From the sequence record MK250019.1: a DNA stretch of 64,000 nucleotides; one strand, given 5' to 3'. Of this stretch, positions 6,139-55,922 are shown one piece after another; within the stretch, counting starts at the first letter, position 1, and each line of letters begins with the position of its first letter. The translations under genes were made by a program, and so were the position numbers. Below the pieces are notes generated by a model, which had not been told where the DNA came from, searched no databases, and saw nothing but the letters and a program-made list of their open reading frames with translations.

Positions 6139-6148
6139 TGTATCTTTG
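6139..6148 (+). promoter_or_regulatory. Bacteroidota RpoD-type -7 element TGTATCTTTG (copies also at 8941, 9336, 28086, 38452)
   Basis: five identical intergenic 10-mers containing TAnnTTTG, each upstream of a gene start. Confidence 0.75.
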
Positions 6149-6154
6149 TAAAAG

Positions 6155-6183
6155 TAAACAAAATAGTTTTTTAACATTATAAT
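6155..6183 (+). promoter_or_regulatory. TAAAC(A/T)-N17-TATAAT promoter-like motif (also 21549, 30736, 35903, 40140, 44237; AAAACT variants at 24687, 50128)
   Basis: exact 17-nt spacer counted at all eight intergenic sites. Confidence 0.75.
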
Positions 6184-6211
6184 AGTTTATAATGAATATA
6201 AAATAATTATC

Positions 6212-6604
6212 ATGGGACTTAAATTTAAAAATCAAAATCCAATTTCTGATAATAATACATTAAAAGTGTATTTCTGTACACAGACTATAAGTGATGATCC
6301 AAATGATGCATGGTCAGATGATGATATTATTATTGTATATCATATTGCTGCAACAACGGTAGATGAAGCTGTTGATCTTTGGATTGAAAAATATTCTGAT
6401 ATTATATGGAAAGATAAAACAAGAGAAGATTTTACAAGAAAAGATTATTGGGAAGCATGGATAGATCATAATAGAGAAAAAACTTATAATGCATATTTAA
6501 ATAAAATTTCAAAATTAAAAAGGAAACTAAGTAAATCAATGATAGAAATTCCCGGTATTTTTCATATTGGTAAACCTTGTGTACTTTTAAAATCAAAATT
6601 ATGA
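6212..6604 (+). CDS. hypothetical protein
   Basis: 130 aa ORF, TGA stop overlapping next ATG. Confidence 0.7.
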   Translation: MGLKFKNQNPISDNNTLKVYFCTQTISDDPNDAWSDDDIIIVYHIAATTVDEAVDLWIEKYSDIIWKDKTREDFTRKDYWEAWIDHNREKTYNAYLNKISKLKRKLSKSMIEIPGIFHIGKPCVLLKSKL

Positions 6605-8853: not shown

Positions 8854-8986
8854 TAAAAGTAGTTTAAAGTTTAATAATAATTTAATTTTAGTGTGATTAG
8901 AATTTATTTCTAGTCACACTTTTTTATTTTATAATAATTGTGTATCTTTGTAATATAATATATTGTTTAAACATAAGTTATTTAAT

Positions 8987-9313
8987 ATGATAAAATTTAA
9001 AAATCAAACATCAAATAATACTATATCATCAGATGTAATTAAAGATTTAATAGATACATTACCAACTACAAAATCACCAATATTTAAAACGAAGAATTTT
9101 ACTATTCGTGATTTACGTATTGGAAGTATTATACGTATTCATTTATGTAATGATTCCCGTGGTGATAAAGGATATGTTACAACAGAAATTGTTGCATTAT
9201 TTAATTCAATGGGACAACATATATATAATTCTAATGCAGATTTTGCAATTGTATATGAAGGTATAGTATGGACTGCAAATTGTACACAAATAGATAAAAT
9301 AATTTCGTATTAA
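8987..9313 (+). CDS. hypothetical protein
   Basis: ORF downstream of TGTATCTTTG motif. Confidence 0.65.
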   Translation: MIKFKNQTSNNTISSDVIKDLIDTLPTTKSPIFKTKNFTIRDLRIGSIIRIHLCNDSRGDKGYVTTEIVALFNSMGQHIYNSNADFAIVYEGIVWTANCTQIDKIISY

Positions 9314-9374
9314 TTTTTTTATTCAAAAATAAATGTGTATCTTTGAGATGTAACAAATAAAACAATAGAAAATT

Positions 9375-9800
9375 ATGAATAAGATTTTTATAACATTGAT
9401 TTTTAGTTTTGTATGTATGTTTGCTAATGCAACATCACATAATAAATTACATATCGGATATGATAAAGATATGTGTAGCGATTATTATGTTCTTTCTATA
9501 AAGAAAGATACTGTATACGTTACATATTATGAATATGAACAAGGTACATTTGTATATTATGATGGTTTAAATGATTTTGCATCATCACGCCTTACACCAT
9601 TGATGAATAAATTGGTTAATATTCATACAAAAAAAGTTAATAAGATTAAAAATGAATATGAAAATCTTCTTATTGATATTAATGTAGTAAATCCTACATA
9701 TCATAAATGTAAAAACAATTATATTGCATTTTATGAAATGGGTATATTATATAATAAAATAGGAAATCTTATTGATAAAGTAAAAAAAATTACAAAATAA
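9375..9800 (+). CDS. hypothetical exported protein
   Basis: signal-peptide-like N-terminus ending ANA. Confidence 0.7.
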   Translation: MNKIFITLIFSFVCMFANATSHNKLHIGYDKDMCSDYYVLSIKKDTVYVTYYEYEQGTFVYYDGLNDFASSRLTPLMNKLVNIHTKKVNKIKNEYENLLIDINVVNPTYHKCKNNYIAFYEMGILYNKIGNLIDKVKKITK

Positions 9801-12056: not shown

Positions 12057-12152
12057 ATAATTTTATTCATCATTTTAATATTAGGATGAAATACTTAATT
12101 ATGAGTATTTCATCCTTTTTTAATAAATATATAAAAAGAAAAATTACCTAAT

Positions 12153-14342
12153 ATGTCAAAAATAAAGAATTATCAAAAGTTAGATAAAAATTCTGTATTT
12201 AATAATTGTAGTTATGCATAGTCAGCAGGTGTTTATTATAATTAGGAAGGTTTTTCTAATGTAACAAATAAAATTTAGGATATGGGAACATATAATCCTG
12301 ATAAGTATATATTAGGAAATATAACTAAACCAAATAAGAAGACATTTGTTAATTATGATAAACATGAAATAATTAATAAAGGAAATAATACAAAAATTAA
12401 CATTAATAATATAAAGAATAATAAGGAAACATATGCGTATGTTTCTGGTATTATGGTTCCTACTATTGAAGCTGAAGTAAAACCTATTACAGAAATATTA
12501 AAAGAAACTGAAAATAATATTACAAATTCAAAAAATATAGTTATTAATAGTAAAGAATTTAAAGAATTACATAAAGAAGAAAAAGTTATTAATAATAAAG
12601 ACGTTAAACAAGTAAAATGTAAATCATCTGTAAATTTATTTTCTAAAGTATTTGAAAATAAACAATAGAATGATATTAATGATGATAATGTAATATATTT
12701 AAATGGTTGGGTATGGTTAAATAGATTTAATAAACCATATGCACATAATTTTGGTGATGATATAAATTTTTCATTTTTGACAGAAATAACAGGTAAGAAA
12801 CATAAGAAATATGATAATGAATTTGTAACAAATTATTTAATGATTGGAAGTATTTTTATTGATAAGTATATAAATGATTTTACAGAAGTATGGGGTAGTG
12901 GAATGTTAAGACATTAGGTATTATATAAAAAACCAAATAAAGTATATGCAGTTAGAGGTCCAAAAACACGAGAGATCTGTTTAGCATCAAATATAGATTG
13001 TCCGGAAATATATGGAGATCCTGCATTATTAATACCATATTACTATTATCCTTATGTAATGAAAAAATATAAATTAGGAATTATTCCACACCATTCTCAT
13101 ATTAATTCAGATATATTAAATAAATTTAAAGATAATGAAAATATTAAGATTATTAATTTTACAAAATATAATGATTGGAAAGATATAATTAAAGAAATTG
13201 TAGAATGTGAATTTATTATATCTGAAAGTTTACATGGTTTGATTATATCAGAAGCATTTAGAATTCCTAATATATGGATTTCATTAGGAAATAATATAGG
13301 ATAGAATTTGAAATATGAAGATTTCTTTTTATCTATTAATAAACCATTATATGATTCATATTTAGTAAATGAAGATACAACATATGAAGACTTATTAAAA
13401 TTAAAAGATAATTATAATTCAACATTTGAAATAGATTTACAAAAATTAGTTGATGCTTGCCCTATAAAATTAAAGAATTTAAATTTATATAATCAGATTA
13501 AACCATATACAGGAAAAGTATTATTATGCTGTATAGGAAAAATGGAAAATAATTATATACGAGAGTTTGTAGAATATTATAAAACAATAGGATTTGATAA
13601 TATATGTTTATATGATAATAATGATATAGATGGAGAACATTTTGAGGATGTAATAGGTGATTATATAGATTCAGGATTTGTAATATTAAAAAATTGGAGA
13701 GGAAAAGAATTAGCATAGATTCCATCATATACAGATTGTTATAATACATATAAAGATGAATATGATTGGATTGCATATTTTGATATAGATGAATTTTTAG
13801 ATTTAGCTTGTAATAATATAAAAGAATTCTTATCAGATGATATGTATAATGATAGAGGTATAAATTGTATAAGAGTTTGTTGGAAACAATTTACTGATTC
13901 TAATATTATTAAAACAAATGGAAATTATTCAATAACTAAATTTAATCAATATATACCATTAGATAAAGATAAATATTGTGCATAGACAAAAATTATAATT
14001 AAAACGTAGTTAGATAATATCATATTTGATTCACCACATGGTGTTATATATAATAAAGATTGTCATATTACATGTGCAAATACAAATGGTGATTTATGTA
14101 CAAATGATATAATTATAAATAATCCTACATGGGAAAATGCATGTTTAAATCATTATCGTTTTAGAACAATAGAGGAATATGTATTAAATAAAATGGTAAG
14201 ATTATGGCCAACAACATATATGAATGGCGGAAAAATGGGATTAAATTTAAATTTATTTTTCAGATATAATACATTTTCATAGGAAAAATTAGATTATGCA
14301 AATTATCTTTTAGATAAATATAATATAAGTAGAAATGAATAA
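12153..14342 (+). CDS. fused polysaccharide pyruvyltransferase (ExoV-like) and GT92/GT2-like glycosyltransferase (729 aa, code 15)
   Basis: single frame with 10 in-frame TAG and no TAA/TGA; NFGDD, GSI, VWGSG, AVRGPKT, GDPALL, LGIIPH, SESLHGLI; then FDNICLYDNN, WIAYFDIDEF, LNHYRFRTIEEY. Confidence 0.85.
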
Positions 14343-14445
14343 ATGAAAATAAAAGAGCAATTAAATATTTTTATATAGTGCAAAATTATATAGAATATTA
14401 ATTGCTCTTTTTTGATAAATATAAAAAATAACATGTTATATTTAA

Positions 14446-15411
14446 ATGAATAAAGATATACGTCCACCTCAGCATGTATTACATGTTTTCGATCCTAATA
14501 GAAAATGTAGACCACATGATGAAGTTGAGTTTATAGAAGGTCGTTATGTTGATATTGTAAATGCAAAGAATAAGGATCCACATACTTTGTATTTCGGTAA
14601 ATCAAAGAATTCTGAGCTCTTAACAGGTATTTTTTTAGGTGATCTTGAACTTACTTCAAAAGTAAAAGATGTATCTCTTGTTTCTGTTGATGGTGTTGTA
14701 ACATTATCTATTAAATATGTTAATTCTGCTGGTAAACTTGCAACTGTAAAAACAAATTTACCTTCATAGAAACTTGTTGAAGATATTAAAAAATTATTAG
14801 AATCTTTTGATACAAGTATTCTTAATAAAATTAACACATCATTCAGTGATGTATATGATAGATTAAATGTTATCGATTCATCAATAGTTGATATTAATAA
14901 TCATCTTACAGTTATAGATACTTCTGTAGGTGAATTAACAACAAGAGTAGATACATTAGATACATCATTATTAGGATTAATAGATGAACTTGATCATGGT
15001 AAGTATAATTATACAATACATGAAGATCCTGGAACATATGCAAACGGTTTCAAAAAAACATTTACTTTATTTAAAGGTGATGAAGAACAAAAAGATTCAT
15101 CTAAGATTGAAGTAACTGATATGGTGTTGAAATAGTTAAATTATGTTAAAGATAATAATGTAATTGAAGCAAAAGTTTGGCCAGAACCTATTAAGTCAAT
15201 CGATTTAATCGGTGATGTTCTTACATTAAAAGATGGTACAGTTATTAAAGATGTTATTTCATCTCTTGATAAAGATTTAATTAAAACTGTATCATTAGAC
15301 ATGAAAGGTTATGACGAACATATTAATGACTTCATGAATACTGATTCATCTATTAATGACAGATTAACTTTTGTAGAAAACCAATTGAAATGGGAAGAGT
15401 TAGATAAATAA
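14446..15411 (+). CDS. putative virion fibre/structural protein 1 (321 aa, code 15)
   Basis: 2 in-frame TAG; coiled-coil-like D[ST]S repeats; ends LKWEELDK. Confidence 0.7.
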
Positions 15412-15454
15412 AAAAGAGAAAATAAATAATAAAATTAAATCTATTAAATTTAAT

Positions 15455-17029
15455 ATGAATAAAAATATGGTTTATAGTGCTAATGAAGCAACTTCTTTAA
15501 CTGATAAAGTTGCAGATTTTACAAAGGGTAAAAACATTCACTTTGGTTCTGGTGCATTTGAAGAATAGAAAGTTGTTGCTATTGCAACAGCAGCTGAATC
15601 TGATGCAAAGGTTCGTTTCGTATATGATGCAATAGGTGATTCTGGTATGGTATTTGTTGGTAATCAACTTGCATCTTCTAAGATTCTTGACATTACAACA
15701 AATAAAGTAGCAAAGAAACATTTTGATCCTGAAACTGGTAATTATGTAGAATCAACTACAGAAAAAGTTGCAACTAAGGTAACAGTTACATGGTTTGGTT
15801 CTCAGGAAGATCCAAAAGATAATGTTGTAAAGACACAGACATGGACTACTGTATTTGATGTTATTGATACAGATACAGTAAAAGCAATGATTGATAAAGC
15901 TTCAGCAGATTTAAATAAATCAGTTGATGATTTAAAAACAAAGCATGAAGCAGACGTTTTACGTTTAGATACATCAGTTAACGGCATTGAGACACTTCTT
16001 AAGAGCGATGTAGTTTCAGCTGACACGGGTAGTGCACTTACAGTAACTCATACTGCTGCTGATGCAACAGGTTATAAGACTTATAAGGTTGCAGTTAACG
16101 TAGATGATGCAGAAGGTTCAACTATTAAGGTTGTAGATAATAAGATTAAGATTGCAAAGTATGCAATTAAGCAGGTTGCTGCGGATTCTATGGAAAAAGA
16201 TGCAGATACTAATGAAACAAAGTATGCATCTGAATATCAGTTAATGATGACTGATGCTGATGGTGTTACAAAGGCAGTTGGTGATAAGATTAACATTGCA
16301 AAAGACTTCTTAGTAACTAAGGCACATGTATGTACATTTAAGTATGTTGCTGAAAATGGCGCAGAAATTAAGTATGATGTACAACTTGAAGATCAATGGG
16401 GTAATTCTCCAGCAGTTAAATATGGAGATGAAGTAACATCAGAAAATCAGCTTCCATGGTCTAAGAATCAGGATGGTACATGGGAACAAGCACGTCTTGG
16501 TTTCGGTATTAAGTATGGTCATTCATATTTACACTTAGTTATCAATACTAAGCCAACTAATACAAAAGCTGCTAGACTTGATGATGTTTATCTTGATTTT
16601 ACAGAAATCTTTACAACATTCAAGGGTGATGATAAATTCATCAAGGTTGAGAATGGCGTTGTTTCTTTGGATATTGATGCTGTTTCATCTAAAGTTGATG
16701 AAAAACTTAAGGTTAATGATACATTCACAGAACTTAAGGCAAAAGATGAAGCAATTGAAGGTCGTCTTAATGGATTAGATACATCTGTAAGCAATATTGA
16801 GAAATCATATGTAACAGATGCATCTCTTGAAGCGCCAAAGGCAGATAATGCACAGTTCAATACTTTAAAGATTACAAATCATAAAGTTGTTGATGGTGTT
16901 GCAAAAGACACAGAGGTTACTGTAGATGTTGCAAATGAAAAATATTATGCAGGATTAAATACAGCATTAAATACACTTACAGAAAATGATAAACATCTTT
17001 CTGCACTTCTTACATGGGAAGAACTCTAA
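15455..17029 (+). CDS. putative virion fibre/structural protein 2 (524 aa, code 15)
   Basis: ATG 15455 in frame via one TAG; SSKILDITT motif; ends LTWEEL. Confidence 0.75.
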
Positions 17030-17131
17030 TTAATTTTTAATTAACTTTAATAATATAATGGGATAACTGATAATAATTCAATTATCCCATTTTTTAGATA
17101 AATAAAATAAAATATAAACTTTATTAATAAT

Positions 17132-19075
17132 ATGGCTATTACTATTAAAAAGTCAATGATTAATGGTGCTCCAGTTATTTTTGGCGCTCCTGCTGATGCA
17201 GATACTGCAAAAGGTGTAGAAGTAAAATTTGGTTATGGTACACTTGAGAATGTACTTGCAAAAGTTGGTACTGCAGATGACGGCGTAATCTATTTCGGTT
17301 ATGATGATGCTAAATCAACTGGTGCAATTGTTTCACGCGGTAAACTTGTTTCTTCAAAAATTCTTGATATTACAACAACTGCTGCTGTAACAGGAGAAGG
17401 TGGTAAAGTAACAAAAGAAGCATAGATTGTAATTTCTTATATTGATACTGATAAGTCTGTTAAAACATTAGAAATTCCTGTTTCTGCTGATGGTAAATTA
17501 AAAGATCTTGCTGATAAGATTGAAGCTCTTAAAACATTAGTAGGTACAAAGGCAGATACTAAAGATACTGATACAGTATTCGGTGCAATTGCAAAAGAAA
17601 CAGATCGTGCAACTACTAAAGAAACTGCAATTTCCGATCTTCTTGGAACAAAGGATGATGATAAAACAAAAGAAACTGCATTTGGTAAGATTGCTACTGA
17701 AGTAGCGCGTGCAACTGATGCAGAAACAGGATTATCAAATAGAATCAAAACACTTGAAGATAAAAAGTATACAACAGTTAATGCAAAAACAGATGGTCAT
17801 GTAAAAGTTGCTGTTTCTGATGATAATGTTGTAACTGTAACAGAAGATGATATTGCATCTGCTGCACTTCTTGGTACTGTTGATGATGTTGCTGGTACTG
17901 CAACTGCATTTGGAAAGATTGCTAATGAAACAACGCGTGCAACTGATGTTGAAGGTAAGTTAGATACTCGTGTAACTAATATTGAAACACTTATAGGTGA
18001 TGCAGAAAAGCCAGATGAAGATAAAGTAATCAATAAAGTAACTGAAGTAATTGATTGGTTCAAAGGCGTTTCTGAAACCGAAAAAGGTGCAACACTTATT
18101 TCTGATGTTGCTGCTAATAAAACAGCTATTGGTACAAAAACTGTAGAAAATACTAATAGCATTTATAAGAGAATTGAAGATCTTGAAGCAAAGAAACATA
18201 CAAAAAGTGATGTAACTGCTGATGCTGGTAAATGTGTATCAGGTATTCGTGTTGATGAAAATGGTGCATTAACAATTGATCAAGCTGAATTATCTGCTGG
18301 TAATATTAATGCTACTGCAATTGTAGCAGGTGATGATACTGTTGCAGTTGAAGGTGATAAGGTTGCTTCATAGATTGAAAGTTTAGCTAAGTCTATTAAG
18401 ACTGCTACAAAGTCTGCTGATGATGCAATTAAGGCACTTGATGTTACAGATACTGCAGTAGAAGGAAAATATGTTTCTGCTGTTTCTGAAGAAGATGGTA
18501 AGATTACAGTTACACGTGCAGATCTTCCTACACTTTCTGTTAAGACAGGTTCAGAACAATTTGCAGCTGTTAATAACCATGAAGTTGAAATCAAGACTAC
18601 CGCATTAAATACTGTTGGTCTTACAAAGACTGAAGCCGGTAAATGGCAAGCAGGTACTGCTGATGCAAAATCAACTGGTCTTGCAACTGCTGCAGATGTT
18701 GCCGCAGAAATCGTATCAGATGAAGAGGTTATTGCAACAGCTCTTAATGACCATGAAAATCGTTTAAAGACAGTAGAAGGTAAAGAAATTACTGTTTCTT
18801 CTGCTAAGTATGATGTTGCTATTTCTGTTGCAGAAGTAAAAGATAGCGATGTTGTTACTACAGCTGCAACTAATTTCAATGTTACTGGTGGTAAAATTAC
18901 ATTTACTATTCATAATGGTGATAAAGCTGTTGCAGAAACAATTACTGCATATACAGAAGATACTGTTAAATCTCTTGTTGAACTTTATGCAAAGGAAAAA
19001 GCTCGTGCTGAAGCTGCAGAAGCTGATCTTGATAAGAGATTAACTTGGGTTGAATTGAATAAGCAAGACAAATAA
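17132..19075 (+). CDS. putative tail-fibre-like protein 3 (647 aa, code 15)
   Basis: TAG at 17423 and 18371 read through; repeats FGxIAxExxRAT; SSKILDITT; ends LTWVELNKQDK. Confidence 0.75.
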
Positions 19076-19857: not shown

Positions 19858-21513
19858 TTAATCTCTCTTTTTATATATTAAATATGGTGAATAACATTTT
19901 AAATAATCTTCCCTAATATCATCTTTATTACAATTTAGAAATTCTTTTAACATACTTTTATTAAATCTAAATTCACTACGTTTATAATTATAATAATTTA
20001 ATGTAAATTTAATTTTATCTGATTCTAATTTAAAATTTAATGTTTCATATAATTTTATATTATCAGTTTCTAAATTACAATTAACAATAATAGAATTATA
20101 AGTATAATTACATTTAAAATAATTTAATAATAGTTTTTCACAACCTATCACATATAAATTATTTTTATAACAAATTCTATTTAATATATAATTATTATCT
20201 GATATATTACTAAATGTCATACAACATAATAATTCATTATTCTTAAATAATCCTAATTTTATATCAGACTCAATATAATTATCAATATGATAAGTATTTA
20301 TAAAATCTTTACATATATTTTTATCTAATTCTTTAATGATACAATTATCTGAAAATACTTTCTGCTCAAGATGACAACTTCTTAATATAATATTTTCTAT
20401 TTTATCTATATTATAATGAATATCATCTTCCCAAAATGTTAACATCTATATATCAGTTTTAGATACTAAATCATATTTTACTTTAAATCTATTCTTACCA
20501 TTAATTCCGCAATGCCAATAAATTCCATTACATTCTATTGCAACTTTATAATCAGGTAAATAAAAATCAAATTCACGCGGTGATATTATATATCTAACAT
20601 GTTGTTCAAACTTTATATTATGTCTCTCCAATAATAATCTTATTTTATATTCTATAGACGTCTCTAAATTTTTTTCTGGATTACATATAGGACACATAAC
20701 AATATCTTTCTACTATCTATTAAAAAATGTATAATTCTTTATTGAAAATGGATTATGTATTTTACATTGATTATAAATTATAAATTCATTTTTATTATCT
20801 GAATATTTAATTTCATAACCACGTTTTAACCATTTATTTTCTATTGTTTTATGTTTATTAACTAATTTCTATTTAACATTATTTTCATTCTTATTCGCAC
20901 ATTCATTAGAACAATAATGTCTAAACCCTTCACTGAATCTATAAAACTTAACATATTTTCCACATGTAGGGCATACAGGACTTTTATTAATATGATTCTT
21001 CATTCGATATAAAATCTCCTGTATAACTGATTTATTCCTCTATAAATCATCATACCTATTCATCATGTAATCATATATACCAAATTGCTTTAACTTTTTA
21101 TTTTTACAATATTCAGATATTAATCTGTCATCTTTAATCATTAAATTCAATACATATTCATCATCAATATTTTCTTTCTACTTTACATCAGTTAATTTAT
21201 GTATTTTATTCGGATCATTTAATGAACATTTATATGAACAATATTGATTATAACCATATAAAAATCCTCTGAATAATAAAGGAATCTCTTTACCACATGT
21301 TTTACAATATAAATGTAAATCATCTGGTAATTTATAATATATCCTATATATGATTTCCTGTATATTTTTTACAGATTTAAATCTATTCATTAAATAATCA
21401 TATAAACCATGATCTTTTAACCATGATTCTTTTATTCTACATGTATTTAATTGAATTTTATTGTGTCTAAATACTGTTAATTTATCTATTATAATCTGAT
21501 CTGTTACTTCCAT
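19858..21513 (-). CDS. free-standing zinc-finger plus PD-(D/E)xK (Vsr/DUF559-like, Hef-like) putative homing endonuclease (551 aa, code 15)
   Basis: three track ORFs joined through 6 TAG in one frame; two CxxC...YCSxxC repeats; EFDFYLPDYKVAIECNGIYWH nuclease motif. Confidence 0.75.
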
Positions 21514-21609
21514 ATTTTTTATATTAATAAATGTTAAAAATGTTTTAATAAACAAATAACATATTTTACTATATAATTTAAAATTTGAATTAGAATTTAA
21601 TTGAAAAAC

Positions 21610-22422
21610 ATGGAAGAAAAGAAATATAAATTTTGTCAGATAGATCCAAATAATTGCACTGTTGAAGAACTTGAAGAAGAAGTAGAAAGACTTAAAAACT
21701 TAGGTGATTTTTACGAGACTAAACAGTTGGCACTTAAGAAATTTATTAATAGTGTTTACGGAGCAACCGCGAGCAAGTATTTCATTGCACATAACACAGC
21801 TGTTGCGGAATCTATTACACTTCAGGGACAGGATTTGAATCATTATTCAGAGAATTCTGTTAATGCATATTTTAGTGGTATATTTCAGAATGATACTGAA
21901 TTGCATAAGAAATTGGGTATTGATTCGGAAAAAGCAAAAAAAGTAAGTATTGCCAAGGGTAAAACAACAGAAACAGGTACGTTAGATGGACCCGAGTTTT
22001 CATATCTTGACGGAAACCAATCATTAACCGTGGCTGGTGATACTGACTCAACTAGCTGGAAATCAAGCATTTACGTTGATTCGGTTAAACTAAAGGTTCA
22101 AGATGCATTTAATAAATTTAAATATGAAAATAATGATACTGTATTAAAATTAAATAATGGTCAAGAAATTGTTCCAGTTCATAATCATAATATTTTATCA
22201 TATGTTGATCATGATGCTGAAGCTACATATAGACCGATAAAATATATTATGCGTCATAAAGTATATAATAAATCAAGGTTCAGAATTAAATCTAAATCAG
22301 GTAAAGAATTAGAAGTTACTGGTGATCATAGTATGATGATAATTCGTAATAATGAACTAATTACTGTTAAAGCAAAAGATATTTTAAAAACCGATAAAAT
22401 TATTACAATCGCAGGAGATTAA
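21610..22422 (+). CDS. polB: family B DNA polymerase middle fragment (motif B to GDTD) fused to N-intein
   Basis: KQLALKKFINSVYG (motif B), ITLQGQ, AGDTD, then Ser-initiated intein block A and TGDH block B; TAA stop. Confidence 0.9.
   Translation: MEEKKYKFCQIDPNNCTVEELEEEVERLKNLGDFYETKQLALKKFINSVYGATASKYFIAHNTAVAESITLQGQDLNHYSENSVNAYFSGIFQNDTELHKKLGIDSEKAKKVSIAKGKTTETGTLDGPEFSYLDGNQSLTVAGDTDSTSWKSSIYVDSVKLKVQDAFNKFKYENNDTVLKLNNGQEIVPVHNHNILSYVDHDAEATYRPIKYIMRHKVYNKSRFRIKSKSGKELEVTGDHSMMIIRNNELITVKAKDILKTDKIITIAGD
22048..22419 (+). mobile_element. split intein N-half (124 aa)
   Basis: begins with S right after GDTD; HINT-like 'KELEVTGDHSMMIIRN'. Confidence 0.85.
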
Positions 22423-22686: not shown

Positions 22687-22777
22687 ATAGTATTATCGTG
22701 AAAAGTATTTCAATGAAGAAAATAATAAACTAATATTACAATATATTATATAAAATATATAATTAACAAAAGAAAAG

Positions 22778-22909
22778 ATGAATTACGATATACAAATAGA
22801 AGATATTGATGTAATAGAGCAATTAGAAGATTTCAATGATGAGTATGTATATGATATTGAAGTAGATGATACTCATACATTCTTTGCAAATGATATTCTT
22901 GCTCACAAT
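22778..22909 (+). mobile_element. split intein C-half (44 aa)
   Basis: blocks F/G ending His-Asn, Ser at +1. Confidence 0.9.
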
Positions 22910-23752
22910 TCAATATACGTAGAGTTTGGAAGAATTTGCCAACAATTAGATATTCCAGAGTCTGAATGTGCACAGTTTGTTGTTAATCTTTGGAATTATG
23001 GTTGTGGACCATATATGCAACAGAAATATGAAGAGTATGCGAAGAAATATAATTGTGATGTAAATATTCAGAATTTGGAGTTGGAGAAAATTGCGGATAC
23101 AACAATTTTAACATCAAAGAAACATTATGCAATGGCAGAATGCTTTAAGGAACCTAATATTTTCTTGGAACCAATGGAGGAAGTTGTTTATAAAGGTTTG
23201 GAAATTGTTCAAGGATCTACACCGCCATTTGCACGTGAATGTCAGAAAGATTTTACACGTTATATGTTGCAGTGGTATCAGACACATAAAGAACGTCCAC
23301 CTTATGAAGAAATTATATCTCGTATTAAGGGTTATAAACAGCAATTTTTATTTAAAGATCCTGCCGATATTTCAAAGGGAAGCTCGATAGGAAATTATCA
23401 GAAATTTGTATTGGATGATAAGAATAAGTTAGTGTTTGGTGAACATTGTCCTATTCAGGTTAAAGCTTCAGGAATTGCTAATTTTATTTTAAATCAGCCA
23501 AAGAATAAGAAATATAAGGTTAAATATAATCCTATTAAAACAGCAGATAAAGTAAAGTGGTATTATGCAAAAGATAGAACATATGATTGTTTTGCATTTT
23601 TGCCAGGTGCTTATCCGATTGAGTATGCACCGGAGATTGATTATGATAAGCAGTTTGAGAAAATGATTCTTGAGCCTTGTAATCGTATTATTAAAATTAT
23701 CGGTTATACGACATTAACATCTAATTTATGTTATACTGCTGCACTTTGGTAA
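22778..23752 (+). CDS. polB: C-intein (44 aa) fused to family B DNA polymerase C-terminal fragment
   Basis: VYDIEVDDTHTFFANDILAHN then SIYV; downstream LELE, KKHYA, YKGLEIVQGSTP polB motifs. Confidence 0.9.
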   Translation: MNYDIQIEDIDVIEQLEDFNDEYVYDIEVDDTHTFFANDILAHNSIYVEFGRICQQLDIPESECAQFVVNLWNYGCGPYMQQKYEEYAKKYNCDVNIQNLELEKIADTTILTSKKHYAMAECFKEPNIFLEPMEEVVYKGLEIVQGSTPPFARECQKDFTRYMLQWYQTHKERPPYEEIISRIKGYKQQFLFKDPADISKGSSIGNYQKFVLDDKNKLVFGEHCPIQVKASGIANFILNQPKNKKYKVKYNPIKTADKVKWYYAKDRTYDCFAFLPGAYPIEYAPEIDYDKQFEKMILEPCNRIIKIIGYTTLTSNLCYTAALW

Positions 23753-27438: not shown

Positions 27439-27487
27439 TAGTAATTTTTTGTATAATATTTAAATGAAAATCTAATTGAAATTAAAT

Positions 27488-36847: not shown

Positions 36848-38386
36848 ATGAGATTTATTAAGTCAAAGGAAAGCGAATTACATCCTAATTATGTATCAAG
36901 AGTAATTCGCATTAAGGAAGAGGATTTTTCTCCACACCCTCATCCAGATGTAACAAAGTTAAAGTGTTGCAGAATTGGTGGAGATACTATATATAATGTT
37001 ATTGTAAGTATAGATTCAAAACCTGGAAAGTATGTATTTTTCCCTGCAAGTACAAAGATCAATCCTGAATTTTTACGATATGCTAACTTATATCGCGATC
37101 CTGAAATGAATAGTAATCCAAATAAGACAGGATTTTTTGAAGAGAATGGCAGGGTAAAGTCACTTAAATTAAAAGCATCCTATGAAAAAACAGATCCATT
37201 AACGGGAGTAAAGGAAAATATATTTTTACCTAATGGTGTTTCAGATGGATTCTTGATTGAATTACAAGTTGTTCTAAATTTTATATTAGATACGTTTAAT
37301 ATAGAAGTAAATGAAAATGATATACCTGATGATACATGGTTTGATACTATTGAACATGAAGGAAAGGTTTGCTGGTTATCTAAGAAGTTTATTCCTAAAG
37401 TATTTACTGCAAAGAATAAAACAGGTGGTGATCAATCAAGATATAAGAGACGTCAGAAGAAATTAAAGAGGTTTAATAGAGTTATACCTGAACAGTTTAG
37501 ATTTCATTATGATTCAACATTGGTAAAGAAGGTACCATTTGTTGTACAACCTACTGATTATATTCATATTTCGGGTAAAATGCATGGTTCAAGTTCGATT
37601 TTTTCTTATGTTTTATGTAAGAAAAAGTTAAATTGGAAGTAGAAAATTGCAAAGTATTTAACTGGTTATGAATTTAATAAGTATGATTATTTATATGCAT
37701 CTAGAACTGTTATTAAGAATCAATATATCATGAAAGAAGCAGGTAAAACCGGTAATGTTTATCATGTTGGTTTTTATGGATGTGATATATGGGGTGAAGC
37801 ATTTAAAATTGTTAAGCCGCATCTTATTAAGGGAATGTCTGTTTATGCAGAAATTGTAGGATATACATCAACTAATAAGTATATACAAAAAGATTATGAC
37901 TATGGATGTGTTCCATTGAAGGATGGTGAAGATTATACATATGGAAAGCATTTTAAGATTTATGTATATCGTGTAACATTAACAAATGTTGATGGTGAAG
38001 TACATGAATTTTCACCAAGGGAAGTTCAAATATGGTGTAAGAATAATGATCTTATTGCAGTTCCTGAATATTATTATGGTAAAGCAAAAGATTTGTATCC
38101 AGATCTTGATATAACAAATCATTGGCATGAAAATTTCTGGAATCGTATGGCATCTGATAAAAATTTCTATATGGAAATGGATTCACCTGATTGTATAAAT
38201 AAGGTTCCACATGAAGGTGTTGTTATTAAGATAGATGATATGATTCCACGAGCATTCAAACTTAAGTGTTACCGCTTTTGCAATAAGGAAGAGAAAGAGT
38301 TAGATGCTGGTATAACAAATATTGAAGATGCACAATCTGAAAATATTGATAATGATGATTCAAATAGTTATATTGATGAACAATAA
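36848..38386 (+). CDS. ATP-dependent RNA ligase (Rnl2/DRB0094-like) with N-terminal extra domain (512 aa, code 15)
   Basis: motif I GKMHGS before the TAG at 37640; YAEIVG, EGVVIK, FKLK after it in the same frame. Confidence 0.85.
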
Positions 38387-38494
38387 TTAATAAATGATGA
38401 TATTATATTAGAAAAATATGGTATCATCATTTTTTTGTTTTAAAAAATATGTGTATCTTTGTAATGTAATAATTCAATTATAAAAATAAGAAAT

Positions 38495-38755
38495 ATGAAT
38501 ACAACATTAATAGAAATGATTAAAAACGAATATAAGAATCGTTTTAATAAAGAATTGACAGATAATGATACATTAAATACATTAGCTGCAGAAGCATCAT
38601 ATATTCAGCAGGAAACATCTGATCTTATTGTTGATAAGGATGAGTTCACAAAGTTTTCTGTAATGTATGCATTTGATCGTGTATTTAATACAAATACGTG
38701 TATGGATTTTCTTCCATTTGATAATACTATTCTTGATGATGAACTTCCTTTTTAA
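38495..38755 (+). CDS. hypothetical protein
   Basis: 86 aa; after TGTATCTTTG motif. Confidence 0.65.
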   Translation: MNTTLIEMIKNEYKNRFNKELTDNDTLNTLAAEASYIQQETSDLIVDKDEFTKFSVMYAFDRVFNTNTCMDFLPFDNTILDDELPF

Positions 38756-40137: not shown

Positions 40138-40186
40138 TATAAACAAATAGTTACCTAATGAATATAATATAAAAATAATTTTATAT

Positions 40187-40987
40187 ATGAGTAATATTTT
40201 AATTATTCCCGATATACACGGACGTACATTTTGGAAAGAATGTATTAAGTGTTGTGAATATGATGAAATTATATTCTTAGGTGACTATTTGGATCCATAT
40301 AGTTTTGAAGGAATATCAAAGCAAGAAGCATTAGATAATTTTAAGGAGATTTTAAAGTTTAAATCTGATAATTATGATAAGGTAACTTTATTATTAGGTA
40401 ATCATGATATGGAATATATTTCATATAATTTACCACGGGATCGTTATGATAGTAAAAACGGAAAAGAAATAAGACAATTATTTTTAGATAATATTGATAT
40501 GTTTAAGCTTGTAACATATCGTTATATTAAGAATAAATTTATATCATTTAGTCATTCAGTAATTGGTCAATGTTGGATTAATGATATTAAAAATATAGAT
40601 AATAAGATTAATAGTATGAATATTATTGATTTTATTACATACCTTAATGATTTAGTTAAATCTGGTGATGAAAGAAAAATGGGAAATATTTTGAATCATA
40701 TAGGATATTCAAGAGGTGGATATGATCCATATGGTTCTGTTATCTGGGCAGATGAATCAGAAGCAGTGGAATTTTGTTGGGAAGATAAAGAAAAAGTTAA
40801 TAAACCAAAAGAAATTGATTATCAAATATTTGGGCATTCACAACAATATAAATTACCGATTATAACTAAGTATTATGCATGTTTAGATTGTAGAGTAGGT
40901 TTTTTACTTAATTCTGATGGTATAATTAAAAATATAACAAATGCAGAAGAAGAAATTAATGTTTCATTTAATTTAATTGGTAATTAA
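40187..40987 (+). CDS. calcineurin-like metallophosphoesterase
   Basis: PDIHG, GDYLD, GNHD, FGHS. Confidence 0.9.
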   Translation: MSNILIIPDIHGRTFWKECIKCCEYDEIIFLGDYLDPYSFEGISKQEALDNFKEILKFKSDNYDKVTLLLGNHDMEYISYNLPRDRYDSKNGKEIRQLFLDNIDMFKLVTYRYIKNKFISFSHSVIGQCWINDIKNIDNKINSMNIIDFITYLNDLVKSGDERKMGNILNHIGYSRGGYDPYGSVIWADESEAVEFCWEDKEKVNKPKEIDYQIFGHSQQYKLPIITKYYACLDCRVGFLLNSDGIIKNITNAEEEINVSFNLIGN

Positions 40988-44224: not shown

Positions 44225-44293
44225 TTAAAAATAAGTTAAACAATTAACATATATTTGAGTATAATAATTAAACAAAAATTGATTTTTTTAAAT

Positions 44294-50098: not shown

Positions 50099-50234
50099 AA
50101 TATTTAAGTGCTAATAAAGTTTATTGCAAAACTTTATTATCATTTTTTTGTATAATAATTAATTAATATTTTGATATTTCATAGTATCAAAGAATAAATA
50201 AAATACCTAAAATAAAATAGAAAGAAAATTAAAT

Positions 50235-53200
50235 ATGAAGGTAACAAAACGTGATGGTAGTTTTGAGAATTATAGTGTTTAGACAGTTAAACGTGCAGTT
50301 AGAGAAGCGTTTAAGTCAACAAAGACTAAATACTCAAAAGACACAATTTCGAATATTGTAAGTTCTATTACGCCATATGATGGCATTCCTGTAGAAGAAA
50401 TACAGGATCAGATAGAAACAAGTTTGTATTCTCATGATCAGCCTAAAGTTGCAAAAGAATTTATTCTTTATCGCAATAAGAAGAAGGAAATCAGAGAATG
50501 GGTTGCTAATAAAGAAGCATTTATTGAAAGATATAAAAATGCATCAAATACTGCAAATAGTACAATTGATGATAATTCTAACGTATCATCTAAGAACATC
50601 GGTGTATTAAATGCAGAAATTCATAAAGGTGATAATATTCTTGTAAGTAGAGGAATGATTACAAGAAAATTAAAAGATTTATTCCCTGATTTTAAAGCAA
50701 AACAATATCAAAAAGATTTAAAAAATCATATTATCTATAAGAATGATGAATCAAGTTTTGCTGGTGCTATAAGTCCTTATTGTGTTAGTGTATCTATGTA
50801 TCCATTTCTTAATCATGGATTGGAAAAGATTGGAGGATTGTCATGTCATCCACAAAATCTTGATTCCTATTGTGGTATGTATGTAAATCTTGTATTTGCA
50901 GTTGCAGCACAATTTGCAGGAGCAGTAGCAACATCAGAATTCTTGGTATATTTTGATTATTTTGCACGAAAGGAATTTGGAGATGATTACTATTTGCATA
51001 GTAAAGAATTCTATAAGATTGGTCCAAAATATCGTAAGTTACTTAATGAATCTAATTACTGGTGTAAAGATGTAGATACACTTAGAAAACATGATTTTGG
51101 TACAGATGAATTAAATAAATTGAGAGATGAACTTGTTTATAATTCGGAACGACCATTATCTGATGAAGAACTTAAAGAATATGAAACAGAACTTTCTAAA
51201 TATGATGTAGAAGGTTCAATAAAAGATTTTACAAATCCTATTAAGATTGGTGATGGTACAAGAACTATTGGTTCATGTATACAACAATTCTTCCAACAAG
51301 TAGTGTGAATTGAACGCACCCCTAATCGGTGACGATTAGGTAAACTCCATGTGAATTGCAGGGACTCTAAAATAATGAAGAAAATAATTTAATATTTTGA
51401 TTAAAAATATATACAACTTATTATAAATATTAAAATAATAGTATATATTACATGAAAATTACAGATAATAATATAGATGAAATAAAACATATGTATATTG
51501 ATGAACATCGTTCATATCAAGAAATTGCTGATTATTATAATGCAACAATATCATAGGTTAAAAATTTTTTATAGTCTAGATAGATAAAACGAAGATTTGC
51601 GCAAAGTAAATTAAATCAAGAATAGTTTGATAAAATTAAAGATTTATATTTAGGTGATAAAAAATATCCTGTATCTAAAATTTCAAAAATGTTAAATATA
51701 AAAGAATCAATAATAAGAAATTATATATTTGATAATAAATTAACAAGAAAAGAAACAGGAGATGAACGACGTTTAACAATACCATATGAAACACTATATG
51801 ATTTATATATAATTAAAAAGTTAGATAAAAATGAAATTTAGGAAAAATTAAATATATGTCGACAAACTTTAAATAAAAATTTAAAATTTTATAAATTAAC
51901 CAATAAGTATTCAAATTATACAGATAATGATATTTGTAAAATGTATAAAGATGAATATAAAAGTTTATCAGATATAAATAATATTACAAATTTTCCTAAA
52001 TCACGAATAAGATAGATTTTAATAAAAAATAATATATAGTTACGAGATTATCGTTTAAGTTAGATGACAAAAAGTAAAGCATATTTTGAGTATGATATGA
52101 GTTTATTAAATAAGCAATCTTTATTAAAGCGTAATTGCTATAGTTATTTTAAATCTCATATATCAACACAAATAAAGAAAGAACGAAATATGTGTGAATG
52201 TTGCGGTTCAACAGAAAATTTACATTGTCATCATATTAAACCATATTCATTAATTGTTAATGAGATTATAAAAGAAAATAAAAATTTATCTGATACTGAA
52301 TTATATAATGTAATTACTCATGATTCTAGATTTTTAGATACAAATAATATTAAAGTTGTATGTGAAAAATGTCATTATACGATATTTCATTCATACCTTC
52401 ATTATCAAGGGAATCGTGCAGCCAAGCCTAATAATTAGGAAGGTTCAACGACTATCGAAAACATAGAATAAACAAATAAGAGTTTATTTGAAGAAGTGAG
52501 TAGAGTACATAACAAGTGTTATGGAAGTGCATGGCAACTTAATCTAATCAATTAAGTTGGAGAAATAGTCTAAACGAATTTTTAATTCCCTCTATTACTG
52601 AAATGTAATAGTTGTCTATAGAAATATAGAGCAGTTATAAACTGAATATAAATTAACGATTTATATTTAATATATTTGATTCAATTAACCAACCCGCAGC
52701 AAGTCGTGGTCTGCAATCTGCATTTGTAAATTTCTCTTATTTTGATAAGCCTTTCTTTGAAGGTATGTTTGGGGAATTTGTATTTCCAGATGAAGAAGGT
52801 ACAAGACCTTGTTGGGAAAGTGTTTCATGGTTGCAGAAAGATTTTATGATTTGGTTTAATAAAGAGCGCCTTCGTACTATAATCACTTTCCCTGTTGAAA
52901 GTTTTGCATTGGTATATAAGGATGGAAAGTTTGTAGATGAAGATTCTGCAGATTTTGTTGCAGAAGAATATTCTCGTGGTCATTCATTCTTTACTTATAT
53001 GTCAGATACTGTTGATTCATTATCAAGCTGCTGTTTCGATGGTGATACACCATTTATGTTTGTAGAACCTCTTAATATGGAAGAGCATGGTGGTAATAAT
53101 GCATATATGGTTTCAACTATTAAAGATGCATATGAAAAATATAAAGATGATATAATTAATGTATATCATATGAATTTTAATGGTACTACAGGTAAATGTA

Positions 53201-55791
53201 CAGGTGAATGGGTAAATGCAAAATTTGTAAAAGCACAAGCTATTCAGGAAGTACGAATTTATTTTAAACCAGATGATTTCAATCCAGATGAGTCAAGGAA
53301 TGTAATGAGAGTTACGCCGGATCATATATTCCCTGTTATTGATGATAATGGATTTATTACAGATAAAAATGCATATTTATTACAGACTGGAGATCAACTT
53401 ATTTTTGAATATGCACAATATATGGGATTATTTAGAGATGAATTTCCTGATAGAGATCAAGATTTAGTAAAACGTGCTATTTCAAAAGTTGAAATTGTAA
53501 ATCTTGATGAACCAAAGGATTATTATTGTGTAGAGTTATGTGATAAAAATATTGAACCATACTTTTTGTTACCTAATGGAAATATTACACATAACTGTCG
53601 CCTTAAGAATAAGATTCAAACAAAGGAATTTAATTTTACAAATGGTAACTTAGGGATCAACTTGGGTCCTTTATGTGCTTAATTGCTAATCAAGCAATGT
53701 ATTAATATAGCGATATTAATGCATCGGTGAAGCCTAAACATAAGTTGTGAAACTATATGCATGGTAATACCGAACCAAGTTAATAAATATGTTATAATTT
53801 TACATTTATAATATATGAATAATAAAATATTTACAATTTACAAAATATCATTTCCAAATGGAAAAGTATATATTGGTTAGACATATCATTATCATTAGAG
53901 AATTAAAGAACATTTAAATGAAATGAAACATAGTGATTATAAATTATATAGAGCTATGAGGAAATATAATATAAATGAAAATAATTTTTCTATAGTAGAA
54001 GAAAATATTTTAACATAGAACGATGCAGATAATAAAGAAATATATTATATCAATTTATATGATAGTTATAATAATGGATATAATTCTACATTAGGTGGAC
54101 ATGCTGCAACAATAACAAAAATAGGAGAAGAACATCCTAAAGCTATATTAAATGATAATGAATTATTAGAATTAAGAAAAATTAGATATTCTATGAAATA
54201 TACATTTGGAGAAGTATATGATATGTATAAAAATAAAATGTCAAAAAGTGGTTTTTCAAAATATTGGCATTATTATACAAGACCTGAAATCGGAGAAGAA
54301 TATAATACTGATGAAGTAAATAAATTTTATAAATCTGATAGGAGAACAAGAAGAGGTATATTACATGCAAATTCAAGAAATTTATCAGATGAAGAAGTTT
54401 TAAATATAAGAATACGATATTTTGTAAATGGTGAAAAAGAAGATGATATTTTTAAAAAATATAAACACTTATATTCAAAGAGTGGTTTTAATAAAATATT
54501 ATTTGGATAGTCATATATGCATGTAAAAATGCCTATTAAAACAGATAAGTGTAAATAGAAATTACCATAGTTATCAAAAGAAGAAGTAATTTCATTAAGA
54601 GAACAATATAATAATGGTAAGTCTATTAATGAATTAAAAGTTGGAAAATATGAAAAATATTCAATGAATAATTTTAGAAATATGTTAATAGGTAGAACAT
54701 ATAAAAATTATTAATGTGTGTGGAGGTCATCCCCTAAGTGATGAGCAGGAGGAGTAGGGCTACTATTGATACGTAGCAGTATTTTAGGAAACGAAGTACT
54801 TTAAATGCCGAAATAGTGCAATGTTTATTAACATAATAAACATAAGATATGACCCGGACCATATAGAAATATATGGAGAAAACGTCAAACAGGTTCAAAA
54901 TCTGTAATAACATTAAATCTTAGTCGTATAACACAAGATTGGTTTAATAGTGTTAAGAAAACAGGTGTAACAAAAGAAAATGTAGAAGAACATTATGATG
55001 AATTGTGTCATTATTTTGGTGATATTCTTGATAGAGTATACAAATATCATACTGCATATAATGAACTTCTATGGGATATGTATGATGCTGGTTTGCTTCC
55101 GGTATATAAAGCTGGATTTATTAGTTTGAATAAGCAATATTTAACAATTGGATTAAATGGTCTTAATCAAATGGCAGAATTTTTAGGAATTACATGCAAT
55201 ATAAATCCTCATTATGAAAAATTATGTCAAACAATATTTGGATATATTAAGCAGAAGAATCAAGAAGCTGCAGGTATGTTTAACGGACATAAGCTCACGT
55301 TTAATACCGAGTGCGTACCAGCGGAAAGTCTTGCAATAAAAAATTATAATTGGGATAAAGAAGATGGATATTGGGTAAGTGATGATACAAATCTTTATGC
55401 ATCTTATATTTTTAAACCAAATGACAAGAGCTTATCAATTTTCGATAAAATTACATTACATGGTCGTGATTATATCGGAGATTTCTTAGATGGTGGTTCT
55501 GCGGCTCATCTTAATTTATCAGAGCATTTATCTAAGAAACAAATAAAACATATCATGCAATTTGCAGCACAGGTAGGATGTCAGTATTGGACATTTAATG
55601 TACCTAACTGCAAGTGTGAAGATTGTGGTTACATATCTAAAACACCATTTGATAAGTGTCCAAAATGTGGATCAGTTCATATAAGTTTATATGACCGTAT
55701 CATTGGATATTTAACTAAAATTTCGAACTGGTCAGATGGACGTCAACAAGAACAAAAGACACGTGTTTATCTACATAGTGAAAATATTTAA
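50235..55791 (+). CDS. nrdD: anaerobic (class III) ribonucleoside-triphosphate reductase; exons 50235-51306, 52679-53657, 54885-55791; intein 53032-53595; code 15
   Basis: ATP cone MKVTKRDG (TAG at codon 16); spliced exons total 2958 nt in frame (985 aa precursor, 797 aa after intein removal); joins read QQVVYSINQPAA, LSSCCRL, NLGIQTGS; C-terminal CEDC/CPKC and RIIGYL. Confidence 0.93.
51307..52678 (+). mobile_element. group I intron 1 in nrdD (1372 nt)
   Basis: 5' exon ends U, intron ends G; P1 GUGU|G pairs with CGCAC with U.G at the splice site; AAUCGUGCAGCCAAG element; P7 GACUAU (52450) with AUAGUC (52565). Confidence 0.9.
51452..52471 (+). CDS. intron-encoded HNH homing endonuclease with N-terminal helix-turn-helix-like repeats (339 aa, code 15)
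   Basis: 9 in-frame TAG; CECCGSTENLHCHHIKP...NIKVVCEKCH. Confidence 0.85.
53032..53595 (+). mobile_element. cis mini-intein (188 aa) in NrdD between the two Cys of SSCC
   Basis: starts CFDGDT, VTPDH block B, ends ITHN, +1 Cys; removal restores LSSCCRL. Confidence 0.92.
53658..54884 (+). mobile_element. group I intron 2 in nrdD (1227 nt)
   Basis: exon AGGGAU pairs with GUCCUU with U.G at the splice site; terminal G at 54884; P7 GGUCAU (54725) with AUGACC (54849); join gives GGG AT|T CAA (G-I-Q). Confidence 0.88.
53815..54714 (+). CDS. intron-encoded GIY-YIG homing endonuclease (299 aa, code 15)
   Basis: TIYKISFPNGKVYIG-TAG-T, R..EH, E..YI..YDS.NNGYNST.GG; 5 in-frame TAG. Confidence 0.9.
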
Positions 55792-55815
55792 GTTTTTATA
55801 ACCTATTTTATTTTT

Positions 55816-55858
55816 AATAAGTTATAACATATACTTTATGTTATAACTTATTTTTATT
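55816..55858 (+). terminator. intrinsic terminator after nrdD
   Basis: aataagttataacata...tatgttataacttatt plus T-run. Confidence 0.75.
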
Positions 55859-55922
55859 TAATAGTATTAAAGGTTTATCCTATTATTCAATTAGATAAAT
55901 ATTATAAATGAAAATATAATAT

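Follow-up and report, generated by a model that had tools for sequence, protein, structure and literature searches.

How does a phage that reads a stop codon as an amino acid set the order in which its genes are expressed, and is that order visible in its promoters? Lak megaphages, which have a recoded stop codon, are uncultivated and occur widely in the guts of humans and animals. The question is raised here by a stretch of 64,000 nucleotides (nt), the window, from Prevotella phage Lak-A2 (MK250019.1; 541,299 bp; human feces, Bangladesh), whose position 1 is record position 323,866 and in which an initial annotation had recognized three promoter-like motif classes, read as an early, middle, and late program that tracks with the density of in-frame TAG codons. 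All three motif classes are confirmed in the window. We consider it probable that they are promoter classes, served by a cascade of sigma factors on the host RNA polymerase that is coupled to a TAG-to-glutamine switch; the transcription program and the genetic-code switch thus appear to be wired together. The promoter identity of the motifs, the assignment of sigma factors to classes, and the temporal order are what we infer from the observations below.

The window, of which a 6-kb piece aligns to Lak-A2 at 100% identity, has a G+C content of 26.5% and contains three runs of N. Reading TAG as glutamine merges its short open reading frames (ORFs) into long genes, as published for Lak phages (10.1101/356790). 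For genome-wide counts, we used the record sequence flanking the window together with the window itself, its N runs kept, and called genes with TAG as glutamine by a greedy longest-ORF rule. This gave 611 genes, 378 of them without TAG and 96 with five or more; TAA is the main stop codon (544 of the 611 genes). Positions refer to the window unless marked as record or genome positions, and all promoters named are predicted.

A host-type motif upstream of TAG-free genes

The first class is defined by TGTATCTTTG, which the initial annotation had listed five times and which is indeed found exactly at 6139, 8941, 9336, 28086, and 38452, always on the plus strand. Only 0.24 copies are expected in the window, and none of 100 dinucleotide shuffles reached five. 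The genome holds 54 exact copies, 46 of them intergenic, and for all but one of these 46 a gene in the same orientation begins within 150 nt downstream, at a distance of 18–97 nt. Aligning the 54 copies gives a 41-nt consensus, ATTTTTTTATTTnAAAaaaaATrTGTATCTTTGTAnTGTnA, within which TATCTTTG is invariant (54/54), in line with the claim that class 1 contains the Bacteroidota TAnnTTTG box.

In Bacteroidota sigma-A promoters, TAnnTTTG occupies −12 to −5 (PMC9723704), which places the predicted class 1 start 14 nt after the first base of the motif. A purine is found at this motif position +14, 5 nt after the G of the box, in 51 of the 54 copies. At the place of a −33 element, 19 nt before the box, there is a T-run; positions −21 to −18 are T in 50–53 of the 54 copies, and a terminal G is not the rule. 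Class 1 is followed by short first genes, most of which match no family; the larger ones include genes for a CCA-adding enzyme, NMN adenylyltransferase, and FolD. All five downstream genes in the window lack TAG, as had been proposed. Scanning IMG/VR with a 15-nt class 1 word returned at least 120 contigs, mostly with single matches whose number is near a hand-estimated chance level, plus a few very large Lak-like contigs; the scan was uninformative beyond the Lak family.

A two-box motif with a fixed spacer

The second class, TAAACW-N17-TATAAT, occurs exactly at the six sites first reported (6155, 21549, 30736, 35903, 40140, and 44237) and at three more (27429 on the plus strand, 4441–4469 on the minus strand, and 60528 on the plus strand), which makes nine in the window against 0.48 expected from shuffles. 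The AAAACT variants described at 24687 and 50128 are present, as is the near-match before the helicase, a one-mismatch site at 34352; others precede two DNA polymerase pieces and further genes. With at most one mismatch allowed, 49 sense sites in 358 upstream regions across the genome have the 17-nt spacer, compared with 1–15 at the other spacings from N13 to N22; the 20 antisense sites at N17 are expected from divergent regions. The refined consensus is tA(A/G)AC(T/A)tt-N-TATAA(T/a), in which the C is invariant (46/46 sites). A generic sigma-70 scan for TTGACA/TATAAT shows no enrichment (103 matches against 116 expected) whereas TAAACW-N17-TATAAT is enriched, so class 2 is a specific signal.

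First genes behind class 2 encode NAD-dependent DNA ligase, topoisomerase II, DHFR-thymidylate synthase, DNA polymerase pieces, an exonuclease, SbcD, a DnaB-like helicase, a nucleotide kinase, a PepO-like peptidase, and HtpG.

A T4-like word at a fixed distance from start codons

The third class is the word (A/T/G)ATAAATA. The words noted in the initial annotation are all in place (12122, 14414, 15403, 17097, 51422, 53782, and 55894), but its verdict that this was the weakest call did not hold, since class 3, with ~100 sites, proves to be the commonest class. On its own, the word fails the proposed check of enrichment over shuffled sequence: the window has 48 copies of DATAAATA where 94.6 would be expected, a depletion. 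The signal is positional, and the support for class 3 therefore comes from position and strand, not from word enrichment. Upstream regions across the genome contain 136 sense and 52 antisense copies of ATAAATA; 90 of the 136 sense copies start 25–40 nt before the ATG, and 113 copies start 22–42 nt before a start codon. Among 7-mers, it shows the strongest positional enrichment, with 93 copies within 25–40 nt and 43 elsewhere (10.8-fold).

An alignment of 111 sites, in which ATAAATA is fixed by construction, reads (A/T/G)ATAAATA(T/A) followed by AA at +11/+12. The base before the word is A in 73 sites, T in 22, G in 15, and C in 1, and there is no information from −40 to −2, hence no −35 element. 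First genes behind class 3 include those for the tail sheath and for the large terminase subunit (18 TAG), and within the window four large TAG-bearing proteins without a family match and three homing endonucleases. The association with terminators is modest (24% against 11% under a strict perfect-stem rule). As a separate observation, DATAAATA is about half as frequent in the window as in shuffles; the TAA stop embedded in it explains part of this, and selection may in addition act against stray late promoters within genes.

TAG use differs between the classes

The proposed correlation between motif class and TAG density holds across the 541-kb genome. Assigning each gene to the nearest upstream promoter on its strand yields transcription units with 1.70 TAG per 1000 codons for class 1 (136 genes), 3.37 for class 2 (129 genes), and 11.38 for class 3 (192 genes). 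First genes follow the same gradient: for class 1 (n = 42), 95% are TAG-free and none has two or more TAG; for class 2 (n = 43), 58% are TAG-free and 26% have two or more; for class 3 (n = 96), the corresponding values are 24% and 64%. The difference in first-gene TAG between classes is significant (Kruskal–Wallis p = 2.8e-13; every pairwise p < 1e-4). Together with gene functions that fit early, middle, and late expression, this supports the three-class reading first put forward.

Motif cores are conserved in Lak-B1

We compared the window with a syntenic 43-kb locus of Lak-B1 (baboon), about 77–85% identical in nucleotide sequence, leaving out columns 34300–34600. In the aligned columns, 106 of 108 positions of the motif cores are identical, whereas other intergenic DNA is 79% identical. 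By class, the counts are 20/20 for class 1, 30/30 for the −10 box and 28/30 for the −35 box of class 2, and 28/28 for class 3. The sequence of the class 2 spacer is as variable as other intergenic DNA (79%), and at site 27429 two compensating indels hold the spacer at 17 nt in Lak-B1.

Sigma factor and code-switch genes

Three sigma-family genes in the genome lend support to the earlier suggestion that class 2 depends on a phage sigma factor. The first encodes an extracytoplasmic function (ECF)-like protein of 316 amino acids (aa) with SigW as its best match, an N-terminal extension of ~110 aa, and no TAG. The gene comes second downstream of a class 1 promoter at genome position 221258, and 14 nt before its ATG stands TAGACA-N17-TATAAA, in the same arrangement in Lak-B1. 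The second is an RpoD/RpoS-like factor of 338 aa with regions 2–4 present, matched by RpoD_Cterm over 237 of 238 positions; GATAAATA lies upstream of its gene in both Lak-A2 and Lak-B1, and the gene has four TAG in Lak-A2 and none in Lak-B1. The third came from looking for a gp55-like factor, as the initial annotation had advised: a 128-aa homologue (phrog_234, E = 9e-11 and 1.4e-9) that matches T4 gp55 in BLASTP (E = 3e-7, 29% identity over 107 aa), has a homologue in Lak-B1, and carries TAG at residues 20, 33, and 46 in both phages. A profile for the bacterial beta-prime subunit found no match in Lak-A2; this argues against a bacterial-type phage polymerase, although a very divergent one could escape.

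Upstream of the gp55-like gene, in Lak-A2 (record 153997–154070, minus strand) and in Lak-B1 too, a conserved hairpin with a T-run ends ~10 nt before the ATG. Its loop in Lak-B1 holds TATAAATA, 34 nt before the ATG. The hairpin might act as an attenuator, or add another level of control over the late sigma factor.

Genes that would serve the code switch itself can be placed in the same scheme. A TAG-free gene preceded by TAGACA-N17-TATAAT lies upstream of two suppressor tRNA(CUA) genes, and this predicted class 2-like promoter of the operon is conserved in Lak-B1. The RF2 gene is TAG-free and lies downstream of predicted class 1 promoters. Between the two suppressor tRNA(CTA) genes (record 144866–146352) lies a GIY-YIG-like ORF containing 10 TAG. 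At the matching place in Lak-B1 (2215–2540 of the locus), a tRNA seems to be interrupted after the anticodon region by ~270 nt; ARAGORN makes no call for it, and Rfam at gathering thresholds has no match at this tRNA locus. ARAGORN also reports a tRNA with anticodon TTA at record 211337–211409 (minus strand), which would read the stop codon TAA.

A proposed cascade and its alternatives

In the cascade that we propose, class 1 would be early and read by the Prevotella housekeeping sigma-A; its genes could be translated by the standard code and would include the ECF-like sigma factor and probably RF2. Class 2, tA(A/G)AC(T/A)-N17-TATAAT, would be the middle class, read by a phage sigma factor that is most likely the TAG-free ECF-like one, which would amplify itself through its own class 2-like promoter. 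Class 2 would then switch on replication and nucleotide genes along with the suppressor tRNA(CUA) operon. Class 3, (A/T/G)ATAAATA-N4-AA, would be late, read with the gp55-like factor, and would drive the TAG-rich structural, packaging, and homing-endonuclease genes.

An mRNA for the gp55-like factor with three TAG would be translatable only once TAG is suppressed. With tRNA(CUA) expressed from a middle promoter and the TAGs conserved in the gp55-like gene, late promoters would thus fire only after TAG has come to mean glutamine. The code switch would then be a checkpoint in the transcription cascade, with recoding gating late transcription through the sigma factor itself, beyond its effect on the translation of late proteins. 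We put this last step forward tentatively, as a possibility that we do not favor over its negation.

Several points weigh against this cascade. The RpoD-like sigma factor is left without a role in it and has a class 3-type motif upstream of its gene, and the TATAAT −10 box and the −35/N17/−10 geometry of class 2 fit that factor better than an ECF one. The T4 late cofactors gp33 (phrog_254) and gp45 (phrog_223) find no PHROG match at E ≤ 0.1 in Lak-A2, although both are small and fast-evolving, so that a blank profile result does not show absence; PMC7824862 reports gp33 orthologues for jumbo phage group 2.2 as a whole. The classes are not clean: two or more TAG occur in 26% of the first genes behind class 2, and 24% of those behind class 3 are TAG-free. 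Gene starts are our own simple calls, and 173 of the 358 upstream regions have no promoter call. Lak-like sequence is present in four metatranscriptome runs (animal gut and wastewater) as assembled contigs, which do not prove transcription and are uninformative on starts, strand, level, and timing, so that transcript starts and timing still rest on inference.

The most serious alternative keeps the three classes but has the RpoD-like sigma factor, not the ECF-like one, read class 2. Group 1–3 sigma factors classically recognize a −35 hexamer and TATAAT with a 17-nt spacer between them, and the RpoD_Cterm match over 237 of 238 positions would be consistent with such a factor; ECF −10 elements are usually CGT-like (PMC9723704), unlike the TATAAT of class 2; and about one quarter of class 2 first genes are TAG-rich. 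Against this, a class 3 motif precedes the RpoD-like gene in both clades, the gene has four TAG in Lak-A2, and under such control its product would be made after the replication genes that it should switch on. Because the suppressor tRNA operon is behind a class 2-like promoter, the dependence would moreover be circular in Lak-A2. A conserved class 2-like promoter of its own is found at the ECF-like gene and not at the RpoD-like gene. AAC in the −35 element is a hallmark of ECF sigma promoters, and its presence in class 2 points to the ECF-like factor. The RpoD-like protein, apparently made late, might be carried over, be packaged, or act on a late subset of class 2. On balance, we regard reading of class 2 by the RpoD-like factor as unlikely.

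For class 1, the conservation over 41 nt could stem from recent copying of a repeated terminator–promoter cassette and not from selection for polymerase binding. The 54 copies share far more sequence than a sigma factor needs, including parts of the leader, and in 18 of them the T-run marks the exact end of a hairpin of up to 12 bp, compared with 0.6% of shuffled controls. One third of class 1 sites are thus terminator–promoter cassettes, as at 6086–6148 and 8890–8950 in the window. Yet the invariant core is the host −7 box, 45 of the 46 intergenic copies aim at a gene 18–97 nt away, and orthologous copies stand at the same genes in Lak-B1. Copying as the source of the conservation therefore seems improbable to us, and a cassette is in any case compatible with a promoter. 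Several copies share the whole leader up to the start codon (GTATTGTTAATGAAATAATAAACA...), among them those at 6139 and 8941 in the window and those at record positions 7217, 131283, 285676, 288410, and 394239; the shared leaders and the fusion to terminators suggest that recombination has spread these cassettes, as with the PeSL elements of T4-type phages.

Class 3, in turn, could be a signal in the mRNA leader, such as a processing site or a translation signal for Bacteroidota, which lack Shine–Dalgarno sequences, instead of a promoter. The very narrow distance between ATAAATA and the ATG is what one would see for an element tied to the start codon. The word is strand-specific, however, and often directly follows intrinsic terminators, beyond the reach of upstream transcripts. 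In 7 of 8 letters it agrees with the T4 late promoter; it has no −35 element and is followed 5–6 nt downstream by conserved A's that resemble a start. In addition, a gp55 homologue is encoded, and class 3 marks one functional class of genes, not all genes. We give a leader signal still less credence than copying of class 1. Finally, chance matches in AT-rich intergenic DNA, for which the 26% G+C of the genome and the lack of enrichment of DATAAATA and of the generic sigma-70 consensus might speak, are refuted by the class 1 and class 2 shuffles, the spacing, the sense/antisense and positional bias, the conservation in Lak-B1, and the TAG link (p = 3e-13).

Predicted promoters and neighboring genes in the window

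The predicted promoters described in this section are all on the plus strand. The first class 1 promoter (6116–6156, core 6139–6148) follows the terminator hairpin 6086–6117, has a predicted start at ~6153, and stands in tandem with an exact class 2 promoter, TAAACA-N17-TATAAT (6155–6183), 28 nt before the ATG at 6212; the gene behind the pair (6212–6604) encodes 130 aa and has no TAG. The second (8918–8958, core 8941–8950) directly follows the hairpin 8890–8920 and precedes gene 8987–9313, and the third (9313–9353, core 9336–9345) precedes gene 9375–9800, which has no family match; neither gene contains TAG. The fourth (28063–28103, core 28086–28095), kept in Lak-B1, serves a small hydrophobic ORF that starts at 28109 or 28145, ends at 28282, and has no TAG. 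At the fifth (38429–38469, core 38452–38461), 99 of the 100 surrounding nucleotides are the same in Lak-B1, and gene 38495–38755 is free of TAG.

Four class 3 promoters form a series in the left part of the window. The one at 12122–12135 (AATAAATA with the downstream AA) comes directly after the terminator hairpin 12083–12116 and 30 nt before gene 12153–14342 (729 aa, 10 TAG). The next, GATAAATA at 14414–14427, follows a hairpin with a T-run, lies 31 nt before gene 14446–15411 (2 TAG), and retains ATAAATA in Lak-B1. For the third gene (15455–17029), the word annotated at 15403 exists but overlaps the stop codon of the preceding gene, and the copy at the canonical distance of 33 nt is instead AATAAATA at 15421–15434. 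The fourth, GATAAATA at 17097–17110, follows the hairpin 17057–17091 and is 34 nt upstream of gene 17132–19075 (2 TAG).

Downstream of this series lie further class 2 promoters. An exact site at 21549–21577 precedes a DNA polymerase fragment (21601/21610–22422, no TAG), and a one-mismatch site at 22726–22754 (TATAAA) precedes a second piece (22778–23752, no TAG). The family B DNA polymerase gene is split: 21601–22422 and 22778–23752 match the C-terminal half of the profile, and the N-terminal part is matched by a distant gene at record 122977–124524. A large HNH/homing endonuclease gene (19858–21555, minus strand, 6 TAG) adjoins the pieces in the window. An AAAACT-N17-TATAAT variant (24687–24715) lies upstream of the PepO-like M13 peptidase gene 24749–26671 (no TAG). 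The exact site at 27429–27457, new relative to the earlier list, precedes the nucleotide kinase gene 27476/27488–28036 (4 TAG). Gene 29711–30733 (1 TAG) has a one-mismatch site at 29655–29683 (TAAAAT), and gene 30801–31679 (no TAG) an exact site at 30736–30764 with an exact copy in Lak-B1.

The one-mismatch site at 34352–34380 (TATAAA) ends 25 nt before the DnaB-like helicase ORF 34406–35902. Within codons 12–19 of this ORF lies an assembly gap (34439–34462), and the helicase match (phrog_19, E = 3e-56) covers the portion after it. The left flank of the gap is open from the ATG at 34406, and only one frame is open on the right side; if the gap is 24 nt long, the two flanks are in the same frame, so that continuity across it is plausible, not provable. 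No motif touches the gap, this class 2-like site being the nearest.

Further along, an exact site at 35903–35931 precedes gene 35969–36460, with both hexamers kept and indels in the flanks in Lak-B1. Another at 40140–40168 precedes gene 40187–40987 (no TAG) and has CAAACA as its −35 hexamer in Lak-B1, and that at 44237–44265 follows a terminator hairpin and precedes the HtpG (Hsp90) gene 44294/44354–46333. Between the first two of these lies an RNA ligase-like ORF (36848–38386) made of two standard-code ORFs joined by one in-frame TAG (37640–37642); it could be one gene that is read through only after the code switch, or two genes of which the first ends at TAG early in infection. A one-mismatch site at 57085–57113 (TCAACT) precedes gene 57137–57844 (no TAG). 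The exact match at 60528–60556 lies antisense within a gene of 1013 aa with 18 TAG (59046–62087, minus strand) and is either a chance occurrence or an antisense promoter.

The region around nrdD combines two classes. An AAAACT-N17-TATAAT variant at 50128–50156 lies 78 nt before the first piece of this anaerobic ribonucleotide reductase gene, with a class 3 word at 50193 between them. The gene is in three pieces (50235–51308, 52765–53682, and 55003–55791) that match successive parts of one profile, and the two inserts each carry a TAG-rich homing endonuclease. The HNH gene 51452–52471 (9 TAG), between exons 1 and 2, has a class 3 promoter, TATAAATA at 51422–51435, 29 nt upstream, and the GIY-YIG gene 53815–54714 (6 TAG), between exons 2 and 3, has AATAAATA at 53782–53795, 32 nt upstream. 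A third homing endonuclease gene (55923–56984, 3 TAG) lies 28 nt behind GATAAATA at 55894–55907. The layout resembles that of the T4 introns; Rfam at gathering thresholds gives no match in the window, the nrdD inserts included, and thus no group I intron match.

Relation to known systems

The contrast between TAG-free regions and TAG-rich structural regions, the suppressor tRNA, and RF2 have been published for Lak and crAss-like phages (10.1101/356790; 10.1101/2021.08.26.457843). Added here are the link between TAG and promoter class, the TAGs in the late sigma factor, and the promoter class of the suppressor tRNA operon. The word "promoter" is absent from 10.1101/356790, PMC8346664, and 10.1101/2021.08.26.457843, and our literature search found no description of Lak promoters. 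According to PMC7824862, Lak-B8 belongs to jumbo group 2.2, with no RNA polymerase of its own and with minimal (gp55-type) and RpoD-like sigma factors, a complement that agrees with the sigma genes of Lak-A2 and its missing beta-prime match. That paper lists proteins only, and its passages on Lak and sigma factors contain no Lak promoter motifs and no link to TAG. Since no earlier description of Lak promoters was found, the finding amounts to a T4-like program in a new lineage, with a host-specific early class.

A promoter code of this kind would give a temporal class to ~450 of the ~610 called genes, most of them without an assigned function, and it predicts exact transcript starts that can be checked in metatranscriptomes. 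It also gives the standing hypothesis of a delay of late proteins through recoding its concrete components, namely an early sigma factor without TAG, a middle suppressor tRNA operon, and a late sigma factor with TAG. For genetic tools in Bacteroidota, it offers candidate strong Prevotella promoters and candidate orthogonal sigma–promoter pairs.

Class 1 has, in TATCTTTG and in the purine at the expected start, features of Bacteroidota sigma-A promoters, which have TTTG at −33 and TAnnTTTG at −7 (PMC9723704), but it is far more conserved (over 41 nt), and its T-run, although at the right distance, has mostly TTTT, not TTTG, at −33.

The Bacillus phage SPO1 relies on a cascade in which gp28 is followed by gp33/gp34. 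As in SPO1, phage sigma factors in Lak would replace the host factor stepwise, and, as in self-activating ECF regulons, the ECF-like gene has a promoter of its own that looks cognate. The class 2 −35 element contains AAC, as do SigW-type promoters; unlike ECF regulons, Lak has TATAAT and not a CGT-like −10 element, and its ECF-like protein bears the ~110-aa N-terminal extension.

In T4, early promoters are of the sigma-70 type, middle promoters depend on MotA/AsiA, and late promoters, TATAAATA, on gp55/gp33/gp45. Lak resembles T4 in having three predicted promoter classes (early, middle, and late) on the host polymerase, and in a late promoter that consists of a −10-like ATAAATA word with a start expected 5–6 nt further on and no −35 element, accompanied by a gp55 homologue. 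It also resembles T4 in placing late promoters before structural genes and before intron-borne and free-standing homing endonucleases, and in fusing early promoters to stem-loops. It differs in that the early class has the Bacteroidota −7 box and not sigma-70 boxes, and in that the middle class looks like a −35/−10 promoter for a phage sigma factor, unlike the appropriation of sigma by MotA/AsiA. Furthermore, gp33 and gp45 were not detected in Lak-A2 with PHROG profiles, and the late box begins mostly with A instead of T. Finally, the Lak classes track the use of a recoded stop codon, whereas T4 has none. The program itself resembles that of T4, and its coupling to the code switch is the new part.

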